64,000 bases of DNA from Andalucia godoyi And28 (lineage: Eukaryota; Protista; Jakobida): the NCBI GenBank assembly GCA_009859145.1, contig VRVR01000014.1:269351-333350 (forward strand), read 5' to 3'. Below, one piece after another: positions 1,816-51,775 of this stretch. Each line of letters begins with the position of its first letter. The first letter of the stretch is position 1. The translations under genes and the position numbers were made by a program. Under the pieces are notes generated by a model, which did not search any database, was not told where the DNA came from, and was given only the letters and a program-made list of their open reading frames with translations.

Positions 1816-2265
1816 GCGATTTTCTCAAATCTAAATTCACCAGGGAAAACAGGTCCAAAGTATTGTGCTGTAGGAATACACATGTCCATATCCTTGCGCT
1901 CATCATTAAATACCCAGACTTTTTGCTCGTGTTGAAAGATGTGTTGCGATGGTTGCTCATACGTTGTTTGCACTACAGTAGGTGCTGCGAATCTCGACAG
2001 AAAACCGAGAAGGTCACTCAAAAATGCTTCATTCATTCATTGTCGAGGCAACTCTTCTTTAAAAAAAGTAGCGTTTGTTATTTTTCGATCTGAGATGTTT
2101 TATAATATATAGAGGAACCACATGAGATGCAAAATTCGGAACCCCGTTTAATTAATTTAAAAAAATGCATCTCGAAGCGAGCGCGGTTAAAGCCAAAACA
2201 CTTTGATTTCTCTTCCACGACGCTCAGAAGATGATGGGGCTTCCTCTGGAAAGATCGAGTAAATC

Positions 2266-2808
2266 GTGGACGCCTCTACTCCGTCGAATCCATCCAAAAC
2301 TACCTCGCAAGCCGCTCCGTCACCACTGCCACGGAAAAAAAGAATGCAAAGAGAAGACGATCTGTTGCGCGAGAGTTCTCCAGCGATCATCAACGGCCCG
2401 ATCTCGAAACGACAAGTCCAAGACCCTTCAAACGACAATATCGCGTCCGGGAGCAACTTCAACCGCCCCGGTCTTAAAGACGATGCCGTAGCGGAAACGT
2501 CGAAGAAGCTGTGGTTGTCCACAAAGACCGTGTCGCTCGATTCGGTTTCGATCTCCTCAGCTTGGATTTTCCCAGACGTTTGCTGTTCGACTCCGATCAT
2601 TCACACGGACACGACGAGCAGCGTTGACCTGTTGTGGTCCACGACGAAGCAACTGAAGAGTACAAACATTGTGGAGTTCGAAGTGGATCGCGATTGGCTT
2701 TGGTGCTCGAAATGCATGTTTGAAGCATTATTCAATCATTCTGAGCGCCTTTGCTTTAAGCGAAGTGCGCGATGGGTGCCTCGGCGCTTCTCGTGTACGG
2801 AGTTGTAA
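2266..2808 (+). CDS. Hypothetical protein (start and splicing uncertain)
   Basis: 180-codon open frame with a GTG start just after a stop; first ATG at about 2344; no recognisable motif; a competing minus-strand ORF lies at 2187-2600. Confidence 0.3.
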   Translation: MDASTPSNPSKTTSQAAPSPLPRKKRMQREDDLLRESSPAIINGPISKRQVQDPSNDNIASGSNFNRPGLKDDAVAETSKKLWLSTKTVSLDSVSISSAWIFPDVCCSTPIIHTDTTSSVDLLWSTTKQLKSTNIVEFEVDRDWLWCSKCMFEALFNHSERLCFKRSARWVPRRFSCTEL

Positions 2809-8908: not shown

Positions 8909-9655
8909 TCGAGAACAACCATTTGTGCTGCAGATTGCTGCTGCTCGGAAAGAATAATGTAAAATCAAAGAAAAATACAGCAACAAAAGACAACGAACAA
9001 CGAGAAATTAAAAGTCTCCATGGAGAAAAAAAAACACGGCGACTGTAGTCGAACGAAAAAGCAGAACTACAGGAGGAGCCAAAAGGGGAAAAAAAAAGGA
9101 GTCTGTGCGGAGTGATGCATCTGTGCTGGCGGCACGAGGAGCAGATCCCTCGACCGAACACTGGGGTCGGTTTTGACTGCTCTGTTGCCAGCCTCGTCCG
9201 TTGCCCAATCTCTTTAATCGCCGTGATGCCAAAGCCGCTTACGCAGCAGCACCCCTGCAAACAGCGCCCTTCGAGCGGTGCTCAAAACCCTAATCCGCCA
9301 GCCCGGAACACCCGCGCCCATTCTCCAATCTCCACCTTCTCCCAGTCGCAAAGAGTCACAGCCGGTGCCGCCGGCCAAGGCTAAGCACACAGCGCAGCCA
9401 AGGTTGCTTTTCAATGTGCGGCACTCTCACTACTTTCATACTTGTGGGTGTGGTTGCGAGCTGGACTGGTTTTAATTTTGGCAGATTTTTTGTTTTTACG
9501 ACCAGTTGTTTTCTAGGGGCGAGAGTCGATGTCTTTTGGTGACCTCGGACAGGAGAGGCGTATCAGAACGAACATATCGGCGCCTCGGGAGGCACGGCAA
9601 TGCGCTGCAAATAAACAGAAAAAGGAAGAGAAGGACATGGATGATGGGTACTGTA

Positions 9656-11182: not shown

Positions 11183-11599
11183 GGCGTTCTGCAGCCCTTC
11201 TTTTCCTTTTTTTAAAAAAAATTAAAAAAAGTGATATACAATAAATAAACAAATCTAACATTTAAAAAAAGGTTTCTTCTTCTTGTCAGCAATGCGCAAT
11301 CATTAATGATCGCGTCTTTTAATGTGGTGACGATTTCGGCATTTCGGAATTATCGGATTTTGCCTCTGCTTGGAAGCAACAAAAACAAAGGGGGGAATTG
11401 AGCGAAATGAAACTGCCGGATCTTTTACGATTCCTTGCATCAATGTGATGCAACCGCACGTTTCCTTCCTTTCGGATTATGATGGAACGAAACGAAGCGA
11501 AACGAAGCGAAACGAAGCGAAAGAACGAAACGAGAAAAGCAAGAAAGAGAGAGAGAGAGAGAACGAGGGAGGGAGAGAGGGAGAGAGGGAGAGAGAGAG

Positions 11600-12766
11600 A
11601 TGTACGTGGCGAGCAAGAGTGTGTGGAACAGCCATCAAGTGTCGGACGAGTGTTATGTGCTTGACATGGATCTGAACAGCGATCACAGCGTGCTGTCGGT
11701 TGCATCATCTTCGCATGTGATTAAGCAGTATGCGGCGGACAGCGACTTGTCGTTTCGCAGCGAGCTGAAGGGGCACACACAGCGGATTCACCAGATCCGG
11801 CACGACCAGAGCTCAGCTCCTCATGTGGCGTCTGGTTCCGCAGACAGCACCGCGCGTCTCTGGGACCTTCGCTCGGGCCGCAGCGAGCGCACGTGCTCGT
11901 TCCCACGCGGACAGGAAGTCTACGCAGTTGACGTCTCTATACAGCGGAGCGTTATGGCAGTCGGAGTTGATTCTAGAGTGGTCCTCCTGGACTTGTCGAC
12001 AGGACGCACGATCCACGCATGGGACGACGCGCACTCGAACGAGGTGTCCCAGGTCGCTTTCCATCCGTCCGTGCCCAACATGCTGTTCTCGGCCTCCGTC
12101 GATGGCTTCATCAACCAGTTTGATCTGCTATCCTTGAACACCACCAGCAGTGGCAGTGGCGGAGTAAAGAAGGAAAAGAGTCGGAAAAAGAACGCCGGGT
12201 TCGACGACAACGACGACGACAACGACGAGGATGAGCAGGGAGAGGGAGAGGAAGATGAGGACGGACTCCAAGCGACCATGAATGTGCAAGATGCAGTGTC
12301 CAGAATTGGGTTCTTCGGACGCCAAAATGAGAATTTATGGGTGACGACAACGTCAGAAAGGCTTTCGCTATGGAGCCTAGAGTCTGCCTCGCGAATCGCG
12401 GACTTTGATCAGACCGTCCGAGAGACCTGTGTTGCCGATTACCTTGTGTCGTGCGTGTACGACTCGGATTCAGATGCGCTGGTTGTGGCAACAGGCACAT
12501 TCGACGGAACCATCAGGCTTGCTGCAGTCTCGCAAACTGCAGTCCAGCAGCCGTTTGCGGAGCTGTCTGGCGCCCATTCGGCTCTTGTCAGATCGTGCCT
12601 TGTGAGCTCGGCTGGAAATGTCATCTACACGGGCGCTGAAGACTCGAAAATCACAATGTGGACTAGAAATACCGGAGCTGCTGCACACCCGTCTGCAAGC
12701 AACTCTCCTCTTGTGGACGATGAGCGACGCGCCGAAAGGGAAAAGAGAAGGTACAGTCCGTACTGA
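11600..12766 (+). CDS. WDR89: WD40-repeat protein, WDR89-like
   Basis: WD repeats (LKGHTQRI...SGSADSTARLWD). DAHSNEVSQVAFHPSVPNMLFSASVDGFINQFD matches the recalled WDR89 repeat. Confidence 0.8.
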   Translation: MYVASKSVWNSHQVSDECYVLDMDLNSDHSVLSVASSSHVIKQYAADSDLSFRSELKGHTQRIHQIRHDQSSAPHVASGSADSTARLWDLRSGRSERTCSFPRGQEVYAVDVSIQRSVMAVGVDSRVVLLDLSTGRTIHAWDDAHSNEVSQVAFHPSVPNMLFSASVDGFINQFDLLSLNTTSSGSGGVKKEKSRKKNAGFDDNDDDNDEDEQGEGEEDEDGLQATMNVQDAVSRIGFFGRQNENLWVTTTSERLSLWSLESASRIADFDQTVRETCVADYLVSCVYDSDSDALVVATGTFDGTIRLAAVSQTAVQQPFAELSGAHSALVRSCLVSSAGNVIYTGAEDSKITMWTRNTGAAAHPSASNSPLVDDERRAEREKRRYSPY

Positions 12767-16339: not shown

Positions 16340-16650
16340 TTTTCCAAAATGTTCTCAATGGCTCCCTTTCACCTCGCAGATCTTGTCGTTCGCGGTCCGC
16401 TTACTCTCACTCTCTGCAGCAGGATTGGAAGAGAAAATATAAATAAAATATGTCGGCCGGGCAGCTCTGCAAGGCAAAAACTAGGAAAGCTTTTGGAAAG
16501 CGGGAATTAGGTCACAGTAAATGTCCGATCGAGTCGGCGTTGGTGGTGCGGGGACGACTCCACCGTTCCATGTCAGTGTCAGACTGTCAGTGTCAGTGTC
16601 CGTTTCGTTCTGTCTTGCATTGACTTTTACGAGTTCCGAAAGAGAGACAA

Positions 16651-16736
16651 TGTGTGTGTGTGTGTGTGTGTGAGTGAGAGAGAGAGAGAGAGAGAGACAG
16701 AGAGAGAGAGAGAAGGTTGATTAATTCCCACGCGAT

Positions 16737-16768
<32 letters not shown>
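16651..16768. repeat. Compound (GT)n(GA)n...(CA)n microsatellite upstream of ERH
   Basis: Directly visible dinucleotide runs. Confidence 0.9.
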
Positions 16769-22754: not shown

Positions 22755-22890
22755 CCCTCCGATTTCTCTACAGCAGATAGCAGCATTAGAAGCAAATGTG
22801 TGAGTTCTATTCAGAAAGGAGGGCAGGGCCCAGTACACCGAGGCGTTTCTTCCAATAGATGTTGCGCGCACCATTCCATCCTCGATCCAG
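22755..22890 (-). mobile_element. Diverged Fanzor/TnpB 3' remnant (copy C); boundaries uncertain
   Basis: Frame 22890-22807 reads LDRGWNGARNIYWKKRLGVLGPALLSE*. The DNA resembles copies A and B over this motif, and a CCCTCC..TTTCT / AGAAAGGAGGG stem spans 22755-22823. Confidence 0.6.
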
Positions 22891-23308
22891 ACGTGCCGGA
22901 GATTCAGAACTGTGGGCGCGAGGACTGAGGAGGGGTCTTTTTTCTGTGGGGTGAAATAAATAAAATACAAAAAAAAATAAGTAAATATTTAAATATAAAA
23001 CCTTTCCCCGAACGAAATGTCAATGGACTGGCGTGAATGAAAAAAGTCGACTGGAAAAGCATTGTCTGAAATTTCTGGATGAGCGGGGTAAGGTAGGGTA
23101 AAGAATGAAGTACCCACTTGCCAAAACGAAACCCAAGCTGAGAACCATTGAGAAAGCGAGATGCGGTTTTGCTTATTTGCTTGCTTATGGATTGTCAATG
23201 GTCCACGGATGAACCGCAGGGTTTTCGGTTCTCCGCGCGTCATTTATCACTCTTGTTGTGTTTTTTGCCTGTTTTTGCAAGTGTTGGATGCTTGTCTGTT
23301 GAGGGGAG

Positions 23309-34064: not shown

Positions 34065-34892
34065 CTAGAGTTTGGAGCGTTGGGTAAACTGCAGGGCGCC
34101 GTGGATGCCTTCGGAGTGGACGATTGGGGCCGACGCGGTGATTTCGCGGACGAGGGCTTCGTGTTCAGGGAGGTGGAATGCGAGCTGTATGGCGTTCTGC
34201 CTGTCGCGTCTCATGCAGAGCTGAGGCATGGCTGCGATGTCGCGGGCGATGCGCAGGGCCTCGGCGAGGGGGTCGTTGGCGATGCGGTTGACAAGGCCGA
34301 TAGCGAGGGCTTCTTGTGCCGAGACTGGGCGGCCTGTGAGGATGAGATCTAGTGCGCGACTCAGCCCGAGGAGCCGCGGGAGGCGGATGGTGCCGCCGTC
34401 GATCAGTGGGACGCCCTTTGAGCGACAGTAGACGCCAAACACAGCGGCTGGCGAGCACACGCGTAGATCGCACCAGCACGCAAGCTCCAGGCCGCCGGCC
34501 ACCGCATGGCCCTCGATCGCTGCAATCACTGGCTTCGACAGCTCGAGCCGCGACGGGCCCATCGGTGCGTATCGCGTGTCGTCGTACGGCGGTTGAAGGT
34601 CGTTGATGGCGACAGACGGATCACAGGCTGTCGATGCAAGCGCCTTCAGGTCCGCACCCGCACAAAATGTCTGGCCGGCGCCATGCAGAATCGCAACACA
34701 GGACTTTTCGTCCCGCTCGAACGACTGGAAGGCATCCGACAGCAGCCGCGCCGTCCTCCGGTCCACTGCGTTCTTCCGCTCCACACGGTCAATGGTAACC
34801 ACCCATACTTTTCCAGCTTCGTGAACAGACACAGACACTGACACCGGCTCTTCATTGCGTGTCGAGGGTGCCATTGGAGCCATCCCAAGCAC
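34065..34892 (-). CDS. Enoyl-CoA hydratase/isomerase (crotonase)
   Basis: FCAGADLK, KPVIAAIEGHAVAGGLELACWCDLRV, GVPLIDGGTIRLPRLLG, ALAIGLVNR. Exact start uncertain. Confidence 0.92.
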   Translation of the reverse strand: MLGMAPMAPSTRNEEPVSVSVSVHEAGKVWVVTIDRVERKNAVDRRTARLLSDAFQSFERDEKSCVAILHGAGQTFCAGADLKALASTACDPSVAINDLQPPYDDTRYAPMGPSRLELSKPVIAAIEGHAVAGGLELACWCDLRVCSPAAVFGVYCRSKGVPLIDGGTIRLPRLLGLSRALDLILTGRPVSAQEALAIGLVNRIANDPLAEALRIARDIAAMPQLCMRRDRQNAIQLAFHLPEHEALVREITASAPIVHSEGIHGALQFTQRSKL

Positions 34893-35152
34893 ACCGTGTT
34901 GCTTTCTTTTTTTTTTTGTAAGGTTTGCTTTCGGACACGCTTGCTTTTATTCTATTTAATAATAATAAAATAATCATGTAAATTCACCCAAAACAACGGA
35001 AGCTGTTCAAGCAGTTTGGGGCAGCTGACGCGCATGTAAGTGTCGCTGAGCGCCAGAGTGGAAGGTTGCATGTGCAAGCTGATCCACTGGATCTTCTTGC
35101 ACGGCATACAGCGGATTACAACGCAAGCTTTGCAGACGGCAGCGACAGCGAA

Positions 35153-35463
35153 CGCCTACATTATACCCTGAACATGCATATCTACGAATAGACGTGCATA
35201 TTCAGTCTTGCATCCCGTTGGCTGGAAGGGGATAGGCCCCAACACACCTCACGGCGCTCTTCAGATAGATGTTCCACGCTCCGTTCCCACTCTCGATCAA
35301 TCTGCGAGCTACACGCGGGACACGCAAACATTTTGCTTCCGCCGCTCGCGATGCTCGGTCGCCTTATGGAACAAACGTTGCAAAAAGTGAAACCATAAAA
35401 CCAAACCAACGAATGATAGAATAGATGGCTACGGATGCTGCCTTAAAGAGTGTCGAAAATGCG
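35153..35463 (-). mobile_element. Non-autonomous Fanzor2/TnpB-derived element, copy A (311 bp)
   Basis: Left end shared with copy B (35463-35408). Zn-finger/RuvC-III remnant FCNVCS...GGSKMFACPACSSQIDREW[+1]NGAWNIYLK. Shared structured right end; CG at both boundaries. Confidence 0.85.
35168..35205 (-). ncRNA. Putative omegaRNA scaffold hairpin, copy A
   Basis: CTGAATATGCACGTCTA-TTCG-TAGATATGCATGTTCAG: 17-bp stem (one mismatch, two G-U) with a UUCG loop. Confidence 0.55.
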
Positions 35464-35699
35464 AAGCCTGTGCCACAGGCTGAATTTTGGCCGAGCGTGC
35501 GAAAGCACGGATTCCTGTGAAACAAGCGTGCCAGTGTCGGCCAGTATTGACCGTGTCTGTTTATGGATGCTTCCGAATGCATGACAATGACGTGTTGTTA
35601 TTCAGCGGTAAGATACGCCGTTCTTTTTTAATATACAAAGACAGAAGCAGCAGCATAAGAAGAGTAGAAAGAAGACGAAGAAGACGAAGACGAGTTACC

Positions 35700-38600
35700 C
35701 TAGCTTCGGTATCGAGAAGATCGACCTCGATAATCGGAACGGTAGTCTCTTCGGTCGTCTCTCCGATCTTCGTTTCGTTCATTCCGGCGATCCTCCTTTC
35801 GCTCCTCTGATACTCGATCACTTCCACGGTGATCATCCTTCCGGTCGTCCTTGCGGTCGTCTTTGCGGTCATCCTTGCGGTCATCCTTGCGGCCGTCCTT
35901 GCGGTCATCTTTCCGGTCGTCCTTGCGGTCATCTTTCCGGTCATCTTTCCGGTCGTCTTTGCGGTCATCCTTGCGGCCATCCTTGCGGTCATCTTTCCGG
36001 TCGTCCTTGCGGTCGTCCTTGCGGTCATCCTTGCGGTCGTCCTTGCGGTCATCCTTGCGGTCGTCCTTGCTGCGATCATCTCGGCGGTCATCTCGGCGGT
36101 CATCCCTGCCACGATCACTGCGTCGCTCTCGCTCTCGCTCAGTTTCGCGCTCGGCCTCTCGGGGTCTTTCAGGTTCACGGTAATCGGTTCGTCGTCGTTT
36201 GGCAGCTCGATCCCCTGCATCATCTCGATCACGTTTTCGCGATGCAGTATCGTCTCCACCGGCTTCACGACTGTCTGTTTCACGTCGATCACGATCACCA
36301 CTACGGTCACGATCACGGTCGCGAAAAGACGACTCGGTTGAACGATGGTTACGTATAGATCGCTTTTCCGCATCCGAACCAGCCGCAGAAACAACAGGAA
36401 CGGGAGCAGGAACAGGAGTGGGAGCGGGAGCGGGAGCAGGAAGGAGCAGGAGCGGCACCCGTAGCCGAAGCTCGTGTGGACGAGATGGAGGATGAATGCA
36501 CAGGCTGGTCAAACTGATGGCTCTTGGGAGTTTCCAAGGAGACACCCAGGAGCTGCAAACAGCGTTCTGCTGCGAGTTGGATATCTCGAGAATATGCGCC
36601 CTTGGAGGCGTCGTGACAGCAATGCCGAACCGCAGCATTCAGCTCGCCAAACACGGACCCACAGTGTACCCAGACAATGTTGGGAGGGAGGGCTGAAGAA
36701 CTTTTCAGCACTCCTGAAGCCAGTGGTTTCGTTCGGTCGCGATGGATGGTCGTCTGAACGTCCCGAACCGCTTCGGCAAGGCCTGCAAGCACATGCGTCG
36801 CGGCGCGCACTCGAGGCCATCCTGCAGAAGAGTGCAAGAAAGGGACCAATACTGCTGCAATGCGAGAAACTGCGAGAACTCCAAGCAGAAAGTTCGAAAC
36901 TCCGCAATGGGGGCTTGCATTCTCGGAGAGCTGCTCCTCTTCCTCTTCCAGAAGAGCAAACACGTCGTCATGCGACTGCGATGCCATATCTTGCCAGTCA
37001 TCTCGGCCGAAAGCACACAAAAAGGCCTGCGTCTCCCATCGGCCACCAAAGATGCCGCGAACAAACTCGCCAGCAAACCAAGAAAGAGCACGCGCCTCGT
37101 CAGGAACGGCAACTTGAATACCGGCGCCCACTACATAATGAGCTACCGGCTCAATCATATTTCGCAAAACACGCAACAGGGAAGACTTTTCCCAAGAAGA
37201 CTCCCGCCATCCAGCGAGCAAGAAGCGGGCCGAAAACACTGCGTCTGCAACCGAAAAGAGGGCACGAAGAAGGATGTGCCTTCCGTAAAACTGAGGTTTA
37301 AGTACCATGCCATTATGCACCGAGAAGAACGAACCGAGCATCGAGTATCGTGTGCGGATACGAATCGTGTCCATCGCAACAGTCTTCCCCATTCCAGCAA
37401 GAAACGAATGGGACGTGGCCCCATCCGAAAGCACAACATCGGATGTCTTGAAGCGCCAAAAAACACGAATGATTTCCGCAAGAGACGCATCAACACCAAG
37501 AACCTCTGCATCCGCATCGGCAATCTCCGTGGATGTCCAACTGGCAACAAGATCGGCATTCTTGTCTTCCAGGCGACCCGACAGGCGAACCTGTTCCATT
37601 GCAGCGCATATGACAAGCACAAGTGAATTCGCCAGTGCATTCAGTCCATTCAGGGAGACTGTCGATGCTGATTCAGACGACTGTACTATCGCAACCTGGT
37701 GCTTGGCAACCAGCTGGGAATCCAGGGACGGTGAAATGGCTCCGAATGCCTTCTCCGTCATGGCACTTGAAAATGCTTCACGGATGGATTCCATGGTGGA
37801 AGCATTTTCATTGAGCGCGTAGATAGGAGCTATGGACGTCAGCAAGAATGGTCCAAACCTCACCCACTCTTCCACAGTCATGTAGAACGTCAAAAAATCA
37901 ACCAATACGTGAATTCCCGAGCGAAGCTCGTCAATCTTGAGACACACACTATGGGCAAGAGAGGAGCCACCGCGATCCAAAAGAGAGGTGATGTGTGCAC
38001 GATAGCTGAAGATCCACTCGGAGAGAATGCGAAATCCAACACCTTTTGTCCACTGCTGCACCAGAATATTTTCCGCTGTTGTGGAATCCACATTTTCACG
38101 AGGACCTGCATTGGCGGCACCAGCAGCAGCCGCCGCCGTCACCGCCTCGGCGGACTCCTCAGCGATGCCGTTCTCCGTTTCCGTATTCTTAGTATCGCCA
38201 TCCCCACCTTCTTCTCCATTTCCCGCCATTTCTGCATCCTTCGCTGCCTCATTTCCCTCTTCTACTATGGCCTCTGCTTCTGCGTCGACTTCTGCGTTCT
38301 CATTCTCCTCATCTTGTCCGTCATCATCCTGATCCTGATCATCGTCTTCAGCTTGCGCGCCAGCCCCAGAATCGTCGTCAACGTCGACTGTTCGAGACTT
38401 CCGCGACGAAAATGCTGAAGACAACGATAACTTGCCAACCGAAGAAGAAACGATCTGCGCTCGGTGGTCCGCATACGCCTGGACTCGATTGAGAGTCTCC
38501 ACATGTTCCAGATGCGCCAGCATCCGGATACACGCGGTAATCAACGGCACTTGTTTCGCCGCATCCGATCTCCAAACTTGATGCAAGGTCACGTCAGGTC

Positions 38601-48687: not shown

Positions 48688-50217
48688 ATGCGGCTTGGAG
48701 CACTTGGTGTGTACTTGCATTTTCCATACTGCAGCTCAGTATGTCCGTATTGTGCGTTTAACAAGTATGCTGCGTCCTCGGCGTCGCAGGCGCTGCCGTC
48801 CGAAACCATTGCCAGCGCGATGGCAAAGCAGGCAGTTGCCACCTTCCGTAGTTGGAGTACAGTCAGCCGCGTGGAGCAACAGATGACCTCGGTGTATTGG
48901 GGAGGTGGAACGCCATCGCTTTGCACACCCCGGGACGTGGGCCATGTCATGCAGTCCATTCGCAGCGAGTGTGACGCGCTCCAGATTGCATGCAATCTAC
49001 GGGAAGTGACGCTGGAGTGCAATCCGCTCGATGCCCGGAACGTGCAGTTCTTGCACGACTTGAAAACAGCGGGGGTTTCAAGGCTGTCGCTCGGCATACA
49101 GTCTGTGGATGCACACACGTTGAAGCTTCTGGGTAGGGATCACTCGCCGCAAGATGCGGTCCTTGCTGTGCAAAATGCCGTGCGTGTCTTTGGAGCGCGA
49201 GGCGTCAGTGTTGACCTGATTGTTGGTACTTGTGCGGTGCGCTCCAGTGCGACAGCTTCCTCAAAGCGGGATCGAGCCGCTCTGGAGGACGAGTTGGAGC
49301 GCGAAGCATCGTTGGTTGATCAGGCGCTGAAGCAAATTGGAACAGTCGGGCACGTGTCTGTGTATGAACTGTCAATTGAAAGAGGCACACCGTTTTTCAA
49401 GAAGGGGCTTTCTCCGTTGGAGGCGGACCATGCTGCTAGTCTCTTCGAAGCTTGCGGCGGGATCCTGCGACGGCATTCGTTTGTTCAGTACGAAGTGGGA
49501 AGCTGGGCGCACGAGTCCGAAGGCGCATGCGCGGTCCACAACTCCACATACTGGGCTCCGTGGATCCGCAGCTCTTCGTTTCAGACGCTGCTGAACGGAG
49601 ACGTCCCGAAGCCCGCTGCAGGAGAATCCGCACCAAGCACAGCGGATGGCGAGTCGGTCGTATGGACGAGCTATCTTGGAGTTGGACCGGGAGCGCACGG
49701 CCGGTTGGCGTTTCCGTCAAGTTCAGGGCCGTCGCGAGTGTCGACGGTGGAAATCCGCGAGCCGAAGCGATGGGCAAGCGCCGTTCTCGCGGTGCCCACG
49801 GATGTGCTGGTGGAGGAGTACACGAGTGTTCTTCGAACACTGGTCGCAGGGGATGCTCCAACCGTTTCACACGTTGGTGCGTTCGCGCGAGCGTCGGGCA
49901 TCGACTACGAGGGATCGCTAGCGGAGTACGTAGGAGCCTCCATCCGGACGCGCAGAGGAGTTGACTTGGCGGTTGCTCGTGCCGTGTATCGGCATCTCAA
50001 CACGGTCAAATCGTTTACGTCGTCCGAAGTGCAGGAACTGGTGGCGCTGTTCCAGAATGAAGTGTCCGCCGGGCTGATTTACCCAATGGACGCAACTCTC
50101 GGGACGATGCGCGGAACTTCACAGGGCTTGGCAGTCGCCGATGCATTGTACACTCATGTATGGGACCGTGTTCTTGGTGTATGCAAAAGCGGTTGTCCGA
50201 CTCCAGGAACAACGTAG
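48688..50217 (+). CDS. RSAD1: Radical SAM heme chaperone, HemW/RSAD1-like
   Basis: YLHFPYCSSVCPYCAFNKY (CxxxCxxC), SVYWGGGTPS, EVTLECNP, RLSLGIQS, YLGVGPGAHGR. Confidence 0.9.
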   Translation: MRLGALGVYLHFPYCSSVCPYCAFNKYAASSASQALPSETIASAMAKQAVATFRSWSTVSRVEQQMTSVYWGGGTPSLCTPRDVGHVMQSIRSECDALQIACNLREVTLECNPLDARNVQFLHDLKTAGVSRLSLGIQSVDAHTLKLLGRDHSPQDAVLAVQNAVRVFGARGVSVDLIVGTCAVRSSATASSKRDRAALEDELEREASLVDQALKQIGTVGHVSVYELSIERGTPFFKKGLSPLEADHAASLFEACGGILRRHSFVQYEVGSWAHESEGACAVHNSTYWAPWIRSSSFQTLLNGDVPKPAAGESAPSTADGESVVWTSYLGVGPGAHGRLAFPSSSGPSRVSTVEIREPKRWASAVLAVPTDVLVEEYTSVLRTLVAGDAPTVSHVGAFARASGIDYEGSLAEYVGASIRTRRGVDLAVARAVYRHLNTVKSFTSSEVQELVALFQNEVSAGLIYPMDATLGTMRGTSQGLAVADALYTHVWDRVLGVCKSGCPTPGTT

Positions 50218-50266
50218 TCCTCACTCTGCAGTACCGTTGAATAATAGCACGTCATTGTCATGCATA

Positions 50267-50774
50267 CGCATTTTCTACACTCTTTAAGCCAACATCCGTA
50301 GCCATCTATCATTCGTTCAGCGCACTGCCAAGAGGCGAACCTCCAAGACACGATCTCCAATCCCCAGCACGCAGCGTAGCCACCCCAAGCAGAGACCGTC
50401 TCTTGCAGAACTCTTGGTTTTCTGCTGCGATGCACCAGGCGCAGTCGCAGTCGCAGTCGCAGTCGCAATACCCCACCGTCTTCCTACCGCCTCTTCCTCT
50501 CGTATCTCCAGGTGCATCAATCGCTGCAACTGAGGACACGAAAGCGCCTGCTGCTAGGGCCGTCAGAATCAAAATGCACCCTTCTCAGGAACAACGTGCC
50601 ACGCTGAGAAATGTGGCTCACCGATTGACCGAGATTGGGGACGGAGCGCGGAGCATCTATCTGAAGAGCGCCGTGAGGCATGTTGGGGGCCTATCCCCTT
50701 CCCGGCAACGGGATGCAAGACTGGGTATGCATGTCTATTCGTAGACATGCATATTCAGTGTATAATGGCAGGCG
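50267..50774 (+). mobile_element. Non-autonomous Fanzor2/TnpB-derived element, copy B (508 bp)
   Basis: Left end 50267-50317 matches copy A. N-terminal remnant QNSWFS...RAVRIKMHPSQEQRATLR is joined to KCGSPIDRDW[+1]DGARSIYLK. Shared structured right end; CG at both boundaries. Confidence 0.88.
50700..50774 (+). ncRNA. Putative omegaRNA scaffold 3' part, copy B
   Basis: TCCCG-GCAA-CGGGA (GNRA hairpin, 50700-50713) and CTGGGTATGCATGTCTA-TTCG-TAGACATGCATATTCAG (17-bp stem, 50721-50758). Confidence 0.6.
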
Positions 50775-51695
50775 AACACACACCTTGCACCACTTCCTAG
50801 GATATTCTGAATCGGGTTGTGTTGTGGACTTTCGGCTCCCCTTCTGTTGCGGCGGTCACAACAAAGCCATCGTGCGTGACGGCAGATAGTCGAGTTGCCG
50901 GTGTTTGGGACTCTGAGTGTCTGCCTCCGGGGCTTCCCAGAACTGGTTGAAAAATACGAGTTGGTTACTTATGGAAACTCTACGTTCTCGTTAAAAGAGA
51001 TGTTTTGTTCGGAAAACATGTGCGTGTGCTGATACACCCGAGAACCGAGTCCGGACCGCCTCAGCAAATGTTGACAAAAGAGTGGAACACAATCATGAAG
51101 CATCAGCCATCCTTTGCTGAACCGTGACATAGCAAAGTCAGTCAGAGCACTCCTTCTGCTCATGCAGCACCAAATGGAGCCTCGGTACTTGCGAGGTACG
51201 TTTCTCGGTCGCAGCAGCTGTGATTTCTCTTTCGTGCTGTTCTGCTCGCATTCACAATCCGAGGTTGGGTACCATCCGTGCACGTTGCTAGCAACACTTG
51301 CAAGGGAAGGCGATCATACGTGTTTTGTATCCGTCCATTAGCGCTGCGCTCGTGTTCGCATATCCGCCAATACCGCTTCCGAACCAGGAATTCTCTGGGT
51401 CATTTTGCTCCTATCTGTGTCCGTGTCCAGCAGTCGAGAAGAGGGATTCGCGTTGTCCTTTTGGCACGTGCTGCAGAATGCCCGTGGGTGTGTGTTGCAG
51501 TGCCCGTGGACCTTTTCATTTTTCGCTTCCCTTCTCTCTCTCTCGCTTCCTCCTGTTTCGTTCCTACTCATTGGAGTTCCGCTGCATCCACAACAATCTG
51601 CTGCGTCATCGCACCAATTGTGATCATTTATTATTTTGCTTGTTTTGTTTTGCCTGAGACGCGCGCTTCTTCGTACGTACGAGAGACTCACATAT

Positions 51696-51698
<3 letters not shown>

Positions 51699-51774
<76 letters not shown>
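51699..51774. repeat. (CA)38 microsatellite directly before a start codon
   Basis: Uninterrupted CA run ending 1 nt before ATG 51776. Confidence 0.95.

Positions 51775-51775
<1 letters not shown>

Follow-up and report, generated by a model that had tools for sequence, protein, structure and literature searches.

Fanzor2 and pro-Fanzor TnpB nucleases are carried by IS607-type elements (PMC3627910, Bao & Jurka 2013; PMC10711439, Yoon et al. 2023; PMC11832414, the ApmFz2 structure), and elements of this type with a Fanzor2 are known that lack inverted repeats and target-site duplications (PMC3627910). It is established for IS607 and IS605 that the transposase is TnpA, not TnpB (cited in PMC3627910). 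In Spizellomyces punctatus the 134 Spu-1 ghost loci have one conserved structure of about 550 nt with clear inverted repeats of 30 nt; together with SpuFz1, which is a Fanzor1, their omegaRNAs proved functional (PMC10432273, Saito et al. 2023). Neither Andalucia nor the jakobids are named in the main texts of PMC3627910, PMC11832414, PMC10432273 and PMC10711439, or in the supplements of the latter two. The jakobid Andalucia godoyi has a compact, intron-poor genome of about 20 Mb (PMC7050145). In a 64-kb stretch of this genome (contig VRVR01000014.1, positions 269,351 to 333,350, hereafter the window) two short relics were found, here called copies A and B, which share both ends. With somewhat more confidence than doubt they are read here as dead fossils of an IS607-type Fanzor2 transposon, each of them shrunk where it sat. 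Two older relics in the window, C and D, and a third copy elsewhere in the genome, P0009, are described further on.

Copies A and B lie 15 kb apart and consist of the following parts.

35149-35610, minus strand: copy A, the whole relic, delimited by its similarity to copy B (conservative right limit 35159)
50232-50777, plus strand: copy B, the whole relic, delimited by its similarity to copy A (conservative right limit 50767)
35574-35610, minus strand: outer left block (LE1) of copy A, found with blastn and nhmmer
50232-50268, plus strand: outer left block (LE1) of copy B, starting with TACCG and including GTCATGCATAC (nhmmer E 1.8e-10)
35464-35573, minus strand: segment of 110 nt unique to copy A, between LE1 and LE2, with a TTCG direct repeat at both sides
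35408-35463, minus strand: inner left block (LE2) of copy A, found with blastn and nhmmer; a large internal deletion begins right after it
50267-50317, plus strand: inner left block (LE2) of copy B (nhmmer E 3.8e-13)
50612-50767, plus strand: right end of copy B, the place where an omegaRNA scaffold would lie

The pairing of the two copies in opposite orientation with common ends, reported in a preliminary description of the window, was reproduced with blastn and nhmmer far beyond chance. The right ends (35159-35313 and 50612-50767, inverted) are 87.8% identical over 156 nt (blastn E 4e-51); they had been described as about 150 bp long and 80-85% identical by eye. For LE2 the identity is 86% across 56 columns and 93% across 43 nt (E 4e-13), and LE1 is 89% identical over 37 nt (E 3e-8). 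The left end of the preliminary description corresponds to the inner block of about 50 nt, but the outer block of 37 nt had been missed. Because LE1 lies outside LE2, the true left boundary is 50232 in copy B and 35610 in copy A. Nucleotide profiles of LE1 and LE2 match copies A and B alone within the window (nhmmer). The two blocks adjoin in copy B and are 110 nt apart in copy A, and copy B looks like the product of a microhomology deletion in a left end of the copy A type. On the right side conservation probably extends about 10 nt more, to ...TATAATG(G)[CT]AGGCG near 50777 and 35149. All common blocks are evenly 86-89% identical and the right end shows no sign of special conservation. The copies differ by about 12%, with private indels in each. 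Neither the flanks outside these limits nor the interiors of A and B could be aligned with blastn. Homologous flanks, which would point to a segmental duplication, had been proposed as the counter-case and are absent; A and B are therefore separate insertions.

No target-site duplications or inverted repeats were found in A and B, in agreement with the IS607 family. The left end and the reverse-complemented right end have the CATGCATAC core alone in common, and the inverted-repeat score was reached in 29 of 2000 shuffles for copy B and in 517 of 2000 for copy A, so terminal inverted repeats were rejected. GCAG stands on either side of copy B and nothing similar surrounds copy A. A GG crossover dinucleotide at both junctions was not found in either copy, with boundaries that two copies fix to within a few bases: the right side reads ...AGGCG in both, and the left junctions are CAG/TACCG and TCT/TACCG (slash at the boundary), without GG. 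On the 5' side of the conserved left end the copies read CTGCAG and GTATCT, which have no motif in common, and no shared target-adjacent motif (TAM) was seen outside the block. The outermost left bases, TACCG, resemble the CCG TAM of Naegleria Fanzor2, which is a lead only.

An 11-nt motif, G[TA]CATGCATA[CT], occurs six times in the window when one mismatch is allowed, every time inside A or B (50257-50267, 50725-50735 and 50744-50754 in B; 35171-35181, 35191-35201 and 35575-35585 in A); this count is not independent, as the motif was defined from the two copies themselves. Each copy has one site in the left end and two that form the arms of a hairpin in the right end. The motif may be a candidate recombinase-binding site.

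The coding remnants of A and B were compared with a profile of 121 full-length relatives of the TnpB family.

35311-35382, minus strand: zinc-finger remnant CNVC-x16-CPAC of copy A, matched by Pfam PF07282 and by the relatives' profile
35259-35301, minus strand: RuvC-III remnant IDREW / NGAWNIYLK of copy A, with the same extra G as in copy B
50565-50609, plus strand: codons of the TnpB/Fanzor N-terminal helix RIKMHPSQEQRATLR in copy B, with the deletion junction at about 50610
50624-50666, plus strand: RuvC-III remnant IDRDW / DGARSIYLK of copy B, with the extra G within the run 50637-50640

Copy A reads CNVC-x16-CPAC-SSQIDREW in one frame and NGAWNIYLKSAVRCVGAYPLPANGMQD, followed by a stop codon, in the next. 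In copy B RIKMHPSQEQRATLR is followed by KCGSPIDRDW, and DGARSIYLK comes next in a different frame. All peptides quoted in the preliminary description were thus recovered, but IDRE or IDRD and NGA.NIYLK stand in different frames in both copies. Shortening the G run behind TGG by one base brings back IDR[ED]W[ND]GA[WR][NS]IYLK in A and B, and lifts the score against the 121-relative profile from 14.9 to 37.3 bits in copy A and from about 0 to 20.7 bits in copy B. The frame-corrected peptide of copy A matches PF07282 with E 1.7e-5 (25.3 bits, just below the cut-off of 26.3) and the NCBIfam TnpB models with E 9e-5, which answers the earlier proposal that the reconstructed remnants be searched with TnpB profiles.

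The zinc ribbon and RuvC-III of the TnpB/Fanzor superfamily are both present in copy A, and B, C and D retain RuvC-III alone. The N-terminal helix of the HTH_OrfB type ([RK]-[ILV]-x-x-x-P-[ST]-x-E-Q...L..W) is found in copy B as RIKMHPSQEQRATLR and in P0009 as MHPSQEQRATPRKW; both align with the start of the core in the relatives, with the stretch by itself scoring a weak 3.3 bits. An intact RuvC D-E-D triad within one open reading frame (ORF) was not found, RuvC-I and most of the protein being deleted in A, B, C and D, and the last RuvC aspartate is E in copy A and G in relic C. A and B have each lost about 1.5 kb of the interior, with different breakpoints. The C-terminus ...NGMQD before the stop codon is common to copy A and P0009. 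A word-index search with three short remnants gave one 58-amino-acid metagenomic fragment only.

The class of the ancestral nuclease can be read from its relatives. An index-free HMMER scan of 1.84 billion proteins gave 17 matches, among them TnpB-size proteins and P0009; the TnpB-size matches end in ...EEYTSKTCGxCG...GGSKxFxCPxC..IDRDWNGARNIYLK. A profile search gave 1170 TnpB-family relatives, with HTH_OrfB_IS605, OrfB_IS605 and the zinc ribbon among the matches listed. The Fanzor fingerprint is DPG in RuvC-I together with a glutamate six residues before the first CxxC (PMC10711439), and the pattern DPG...E-x6-CxxC-x12-18-CxxC-x4-8-D is present in 115 of the 121 full-length relatives. The relics have lost the DPG region to deletion; where the glutamate would stand, P0009 has A, and in copy A the site is missing. 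Since the fingerprint residues are gone, Fanzor membership follows from the relatives alone.

Among solved structures the relative P0022 matches mimivirus L79 (ApmFanzor2, PDB 9b0l) best, over its full length (E 2e-23), and bacterial TnpB and Cas12f over the C-terminal half only (E 1e-10 to 1e-13), a placement of Fanzor2 versus bacterial TnpB by comparison of structure matches. The relative P0091 is likewise best against ApmFz2 (9b0l). An affinity to the eukaryotic and viral Fanzor2 agrees with the eukaryotic nuclear window, with the sister copy in A. godoyi and with the closeness of these two relatives to ApmFz2. Other full-length relatives stand on contigs resembling giant-virus DNA, with ankyrin-repeat genes, dense short ORFs and an intein-bearing gene. 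The origin of the relics from a TnpB/Fanzor2 gene, as first proposed, is borne out by the profile matches, the fingerprint of the relatives, the match to 9b0l and the adjoining IS607 TnpA. As far as sequence comparison goes, it is well supported that A and B come from a nuclease gene of the Fanzor2 or pro-Fanzor kind, with membership assigned by way of the relatives; the link of these two copies to an IS607-type element is indirect.

Viral contigs gave no exact match to 18- and 20-nt words of the right end, and a search of such contigs for related loci with P0091 found nothing. Sixteen metagenome matches to a right-end 18-mer were rejected as chance matches of 18-24 nt.

The IS607 recombinase was found next to the relatives. 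The gene of P0022 comes directly after, and overlaps, a MerR-resolvase ORF of 224 amino acids, which is the IS607 arrangement, and P0091 and P0102 each have a complete tnpA gene upstream. A serine-recombinase TnpA upstream of tnpB is also seen in the related loci L002, L003 and L005 and, as a pseudogene, in relic D. The linked recombinase that the preliminary description suggested looking for is thus present in the relatives and in relic D, but not as a TnpA-frame match in copies A and B. Copy B carries LLQNSWFSA at 50400-50426, and QNSWF[ST][AT] occurs in 17 long relatives (470-650 amino acids), 55-80 residues before the core as in copy B. In L005 and L003 a complete TnpA (Pfam Resolvase E 6.9e-19, MerR 1.3e-5) is encoded in the frame one base upstream of this 'extension': 'KLWLPTKT' is a shifted reading of TnpA 'EVVVTYKDR' and 'QNSWFS' of TnpA 'TKLVVL'. 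The NSWF motif, at first taken for the N-terminus of the nuclease, is therefore what the upstream tnpA gives when a conserved strand of it is read in the +1 frame, and QNSWFSA was dropped as a conserved motif of a Fanzor N-terminal domain. Because the DNA of the relatives encodes TnpA here in the neighbouring frame, this part of copy B is best read as a tnpA leftover.

50352-50560, plus strand: leftover of the tnpA 3' region and the tnpA-tnpB junction in copy B, at positions 79-155 of the relatives' profile

Copy B also contains a (GCAGTC)5 microsatellite, at about 50441-50470.

In relatives from metagenomes the tnpB/Fanzor frame extends without a stop some 200 codons upstream of the core, where it wholly overlaps an intact IS607 tnpA in the +1 frame. 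Such overlaps were seen at L005:5940-6700 and L003:5950-6600, and also at L001:5900-6400, where the tnpA frame contains stops and the tnpB frame is still open. The length is at least 470 amino acids in 57 of the 121 relatives. The overlap is either an overprinted N-terminal extension or a systematic artefact of gene calling; two open frames across about 650 nt are unlikely by chance.

Further copies were found both outside and inside the window. ANDGO_01483 (P0009), annotated in A. godoyi as an 82-amino-acid 'hypothetical protein' and located outside the window, is a third copy. It joins MHPSQEQRATPRKW to EYTSKTCGRCG and to the same frameshifted tail as in A and B, with an additional private frame break, and is, judged from its sequence, a read-through of a differently deleted copy and thus a transposon pseudogene. 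The 121-relative profile, applied to the six-frame translation of the window, found exactly B, A and relic C and no intact gene. A motif scan with GA[RWK][NSD]..x[KMR] gave four sites only in the window, namely A, B, C and 2702, which belongs to relic D.

22816-22893, perhaps to 22668, minus strand: relic C, an older fragment found with tblastn and blastn (profile E 0.017; right-end nhmmer E 1.3e-4)
2235-2760, plus strand: relic D, divergent and of the IS607 type, with a tnpA pseudogene at 2235-2624 and the tnpB RuvC-III remnant VDRDW / FGARNACLKH at 2686-2730

Relic C reads LDRGWNGARNIYWK (RuvC-III) in one frame and retains the right end in part; a left end did not turn up. The ATGCAGGACTGG motif stands about 50 nt farther from RuvC-III in relic C than in A and B. 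A deletion junction common to B and C was considered and rejected, the 38-nt linker being about 45% identical (p about 0.04). The tnpA stretch of relic D, RSGNVEEAVVVHKDRVARFGFDLLS, matches the custom TnpA profile (E 2.5e-6), and the NCBIfam IS607 transposase model NF033518 (E 4.8e-5) and was also found with tblastn (E 5e-4), and this pseudogene carries the motif HKDRVARFGFD. In its tnpB part VDRDW is followed by FGARNACLKH one frame over, and the stitched peptide matches the TnpB profile with E 1.1e-3. The frame break after DRDW falls at the same codon as in A, B and P0009, with a different inserted base; coincidence could account for this, or a hot spot of slippage, or a frameshift that is tolerated. 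A further site, DFDRDW at about 18835, lacks a GARN partner and was set aside as a chance match. The 64 kb thus contain at least four insertions of at least two ages.

The history that best fits these observations, and that we hold to be somewhat more probable than not, is decay in place. An ancestral IS607-type element of about 2 kb, consisting of a left end, the tnpA serine recombinase, tnpB (a Fanzor2-type RNA-guided nuclease) and a right end, would once have spread through the nuclear genome of A. godoyi. The nuclease of the master element would already have been broken when the copies were made, several copies would still have been made after that, and the interior would have been lost last, from each copy at its own site. 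Spread with a broken nuclease is possible because TnpA, not TnpB, transposes. One RuvC-III frameshift of 1 nt is common to A, B and ANDGO_01483, and the deletion junctions run from LE2 to just before the zinc finger in A, from ...RATLR to the last Cys codon of the finger in B, and from ...RKWLGA to EYTSKTC in P0009. The family of mini-elements in the preliminary description would have one deleted structure at several loci, which was not found among A, B and P0009, the three junctions all being different. Decay in place is favoured because no deleted form is seen twice, because in a compact genome deletions can persist only if they stay within the element (selection would remove those that reach neighbouring genes), and because detection is biased toward pieces that retain RuvC-III. 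Deletion in place was weighed against deletion before transposition on two or three copies.

Several points weigh against decay in place. All five relics (A, B, C, D and P0009) retain the part from RuvC-III to the 3' end and none retains the central 1 kb. Such retention also fits a requirement of both ends for movement in trans, but RuvC-III is the most detectable part and the sample is thus biased. The common frameshift proves that copies were still being made once the nuclease had broken, and such spread is in itself non-autonomous propagation of a kind. The published assembly lacks subtelomeric scaffolds bearing 'transposon/viral-like sequences' (PMC7050145), and an intact partner could sit there. 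Both ends were examined in two copies only, A and B. The custom TnpA profile gave no TnpA-frame match in A or B, and the evidence for IS607 within these copies is the alternative-frame motif QNSWFSA of copy B alone.

The strongest competitor, which we regard as unlikely though still worth weighing, is that A and B are non-autonomous 'ghost' elements, deleted forms moved by TnpA in trans whose right ends still make omegaRNAs for an intact Fanzor2. It turns largely on the right end, which has the following features.

50720-50759, plus strand: terminal hairpin of copy B, with a stem of 17-18 bp and a TTCG loop
35168-35207, minus strand: terminal hairpin of copy A, a predicted fold with a stop codon in the 5' arm

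The predicted 17-bp hairpin, ATGCATGTCTA-TTCG-TAGACATGCAT, is found in both copies about 8 nt before clear similarity ends, and the ancestral stop codon of copy A (35202-35204) lies within its 5' arm. This strong, conserved hairpin speaks for a retained RNA, as do two compensatory pairs in a consensus fold optimised on the two sequences, a number that yields no usable covariation. The retained right end measures 156 nt in B and about 250 nt in A, and the ORF ends within it. Its length lies within the size range of known guide scaffolds, which have the same right-end position and measure about 150 nt in the IS607 TnpB ISXfa1 and 205 nt in the Fanzor2 ApmFz2. An omegaRNA of this kind would span the right end, reach 15-21 nt into the flank and have a conserved scaffold with a pseudoknot. 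The retention of both ends, the spread of the family after the nuclease frameshift, the unassembled transposon-rich subtelomeres and the documented ghost loci of Spizellomyces with working omegaRNAs (PMC10432273) all suit mobilisation in trans as well.

Other observations speak against it. The fold z-score is -2.86 for the right end of copy B but -0.58 for that of copy A, no better than shuffled sequence, and four of the five differences in the hairpin are wobble-compatible transitions, indistinguishable from chance. Searched at permissive thresholds, Rfam gave no family for either copy and only sub-threshold, miRNA-like matches on the hairpin, which is not conserved in the relatives L001-L005. 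Three copies show three deletion structures with no amplified deleted form, A and B have diverged by some 12% and acquired their own indels, and they share no TAM 5' of the left ends. An intact element elsewhere in the genome, assumed in the preliminary description, did not turn up: the profile scan of the window, the HMMER scan and a word-index search with an A. godoyi chimera led to the 82-amino-acid P0009 only, and window and annotated proteome contain no intact copy, in an assembly without the subtelomeric scaffolds. Support for a functional RNA from the modelled right ends is thin, and A and B appear to be inert now and not a working source of guide RNA.

An extended form of this idea is very improbable. 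Here an intact IS607/Fanzor2 element would reside in the unassembled subtelomeres, the ORF-less relics would be stand-alone guide-RNA genes targeting their own empty sites, and the RuvC-III frame break would be tolerated or programmed. If true, a jakobid would have a Fanzor2 'ghost' system, and the recurrent RuvC-III break in A, B and P0009 and in D would not be decay.

It is very improbable that the relics stem from a giant-virus segment, with IS607/Fanzor2 elements in it, that became integrated, and not from transposition within the host genome. Close full-length relatives are found on giant-virus-like contigs and viral-like subtelomeric sequences are mentioned in PMC7050145. However, each relic is solitary, 0.1-0.55 kb long and placed in a spacer between ordinary housekeeping genes, no further virus-like genes are nearby, and the same element ends occur at two unrelated sites. 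A giant virus is rather a possible ultimate source of the element than an account of these copies. A segmental duplication of host intergenic sequence without any mobile element is hardly credible: just two end-sharing copies 15 kb apart lie in the window, but they are inverted between non-homologous flanks and consist of TnpB and TnpA gene remnants, and there are a third copy elsewhere in the genome and two older relics.

The setting of the relics, decayed in place as we suppose, is that of an ordinary gene-dense region. The genes of the window are long, intron-free and of housekeeping type, on both strands (among them radical SAM, enoyl-CoA hydratase, PCMT and Kelch-Roc), and five of the window proteins are contained in the EukProt collection. 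The G+C content is about 52% and microsatellites are present. Copy B sits in the spacer after the radical-SAM gene 48688-50217, and the spacer of copy A has the enoyl-CoA hydratase gene 34065-34892 on one side and a gene ending at 36349 on the other. Next to copy A this spacer also holds a tandem array, at 35797-36144, in which a 12-nt unit (GAAGACGAAGAC-like) is repeated about 29 times. Long (CA)n and (GA)n tracts occur at 51700-51775, 16650-16760 and 11540-11600. The window also contains an RNA gene.

9095-9379, minus strand: signal recognition particle RNA, full-length and eukaryotic (Rfam RF00017, 90.5 bits)

The relics place IS607/Fanzor2 elements in the nuclear genome of a jakobid, a deep-branching lineage, and add a new host lineage and a decayed state to what is known. 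That at least four insertions of different ages occur in 64 kb is set in a very compact genome, and together they form a small natural decay series in which the nuclease would have been broken first, spread would have continued and the interior would have been lost afterwards. In annotation, short 'hypothetical proteins' such as ANDGO_01483 are to be taken as debris of transposons. The relics bring no new nuclease, no new mechanism and no evidence of activity. ORF-less Fanzor ghost loci have already been published, and the A. godoyi relics add to a known type.

Several classes of deleted elements are mobilised in trans, such as Ds from Ac, deleted P elements and the palindrome-associated elements derived from bacterial IS200/IS605. 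The A. godoyi relics resemble these in that the ends are kept and the interior is lost; unlike these trans-mobilised elements, they are known here from sequence alone. With the Spu-1 ghosts they share the form of short ORF-less Fanzor derivatives that keep both ends, including the right end, which bears the omegaRNA in Spu-1. They differ from them in number, with two or three copies whose deletions are all different, in the lack of clear inverted repeats and in a Fanzor2/IS607 ancestry; no intact nuclease was found in the A. godoyi window or annotated proteome, and the relics are recognised from their DNA only. From intact IS607-type Fanzor2 elements they differ in that the gene is destroyed, with about 1 kb deleted, the frame broken and the DPG and glutamate positions gone, and in that the left junction has no GG crossover dinucleotide. 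The likeness to that group is seen in the alignment of the relics to the N-terminal helix, zinc finger, RuvC-III and C-terminal tail of the fingerprint-bearing clade, in the relatives of that clade being best against ApmFz2 and adjoining a MerR-resolvase TnpA, and in termini that, like those of IS607-type Fanzor2, carry no convincing inverted repeats or target-site duplications.

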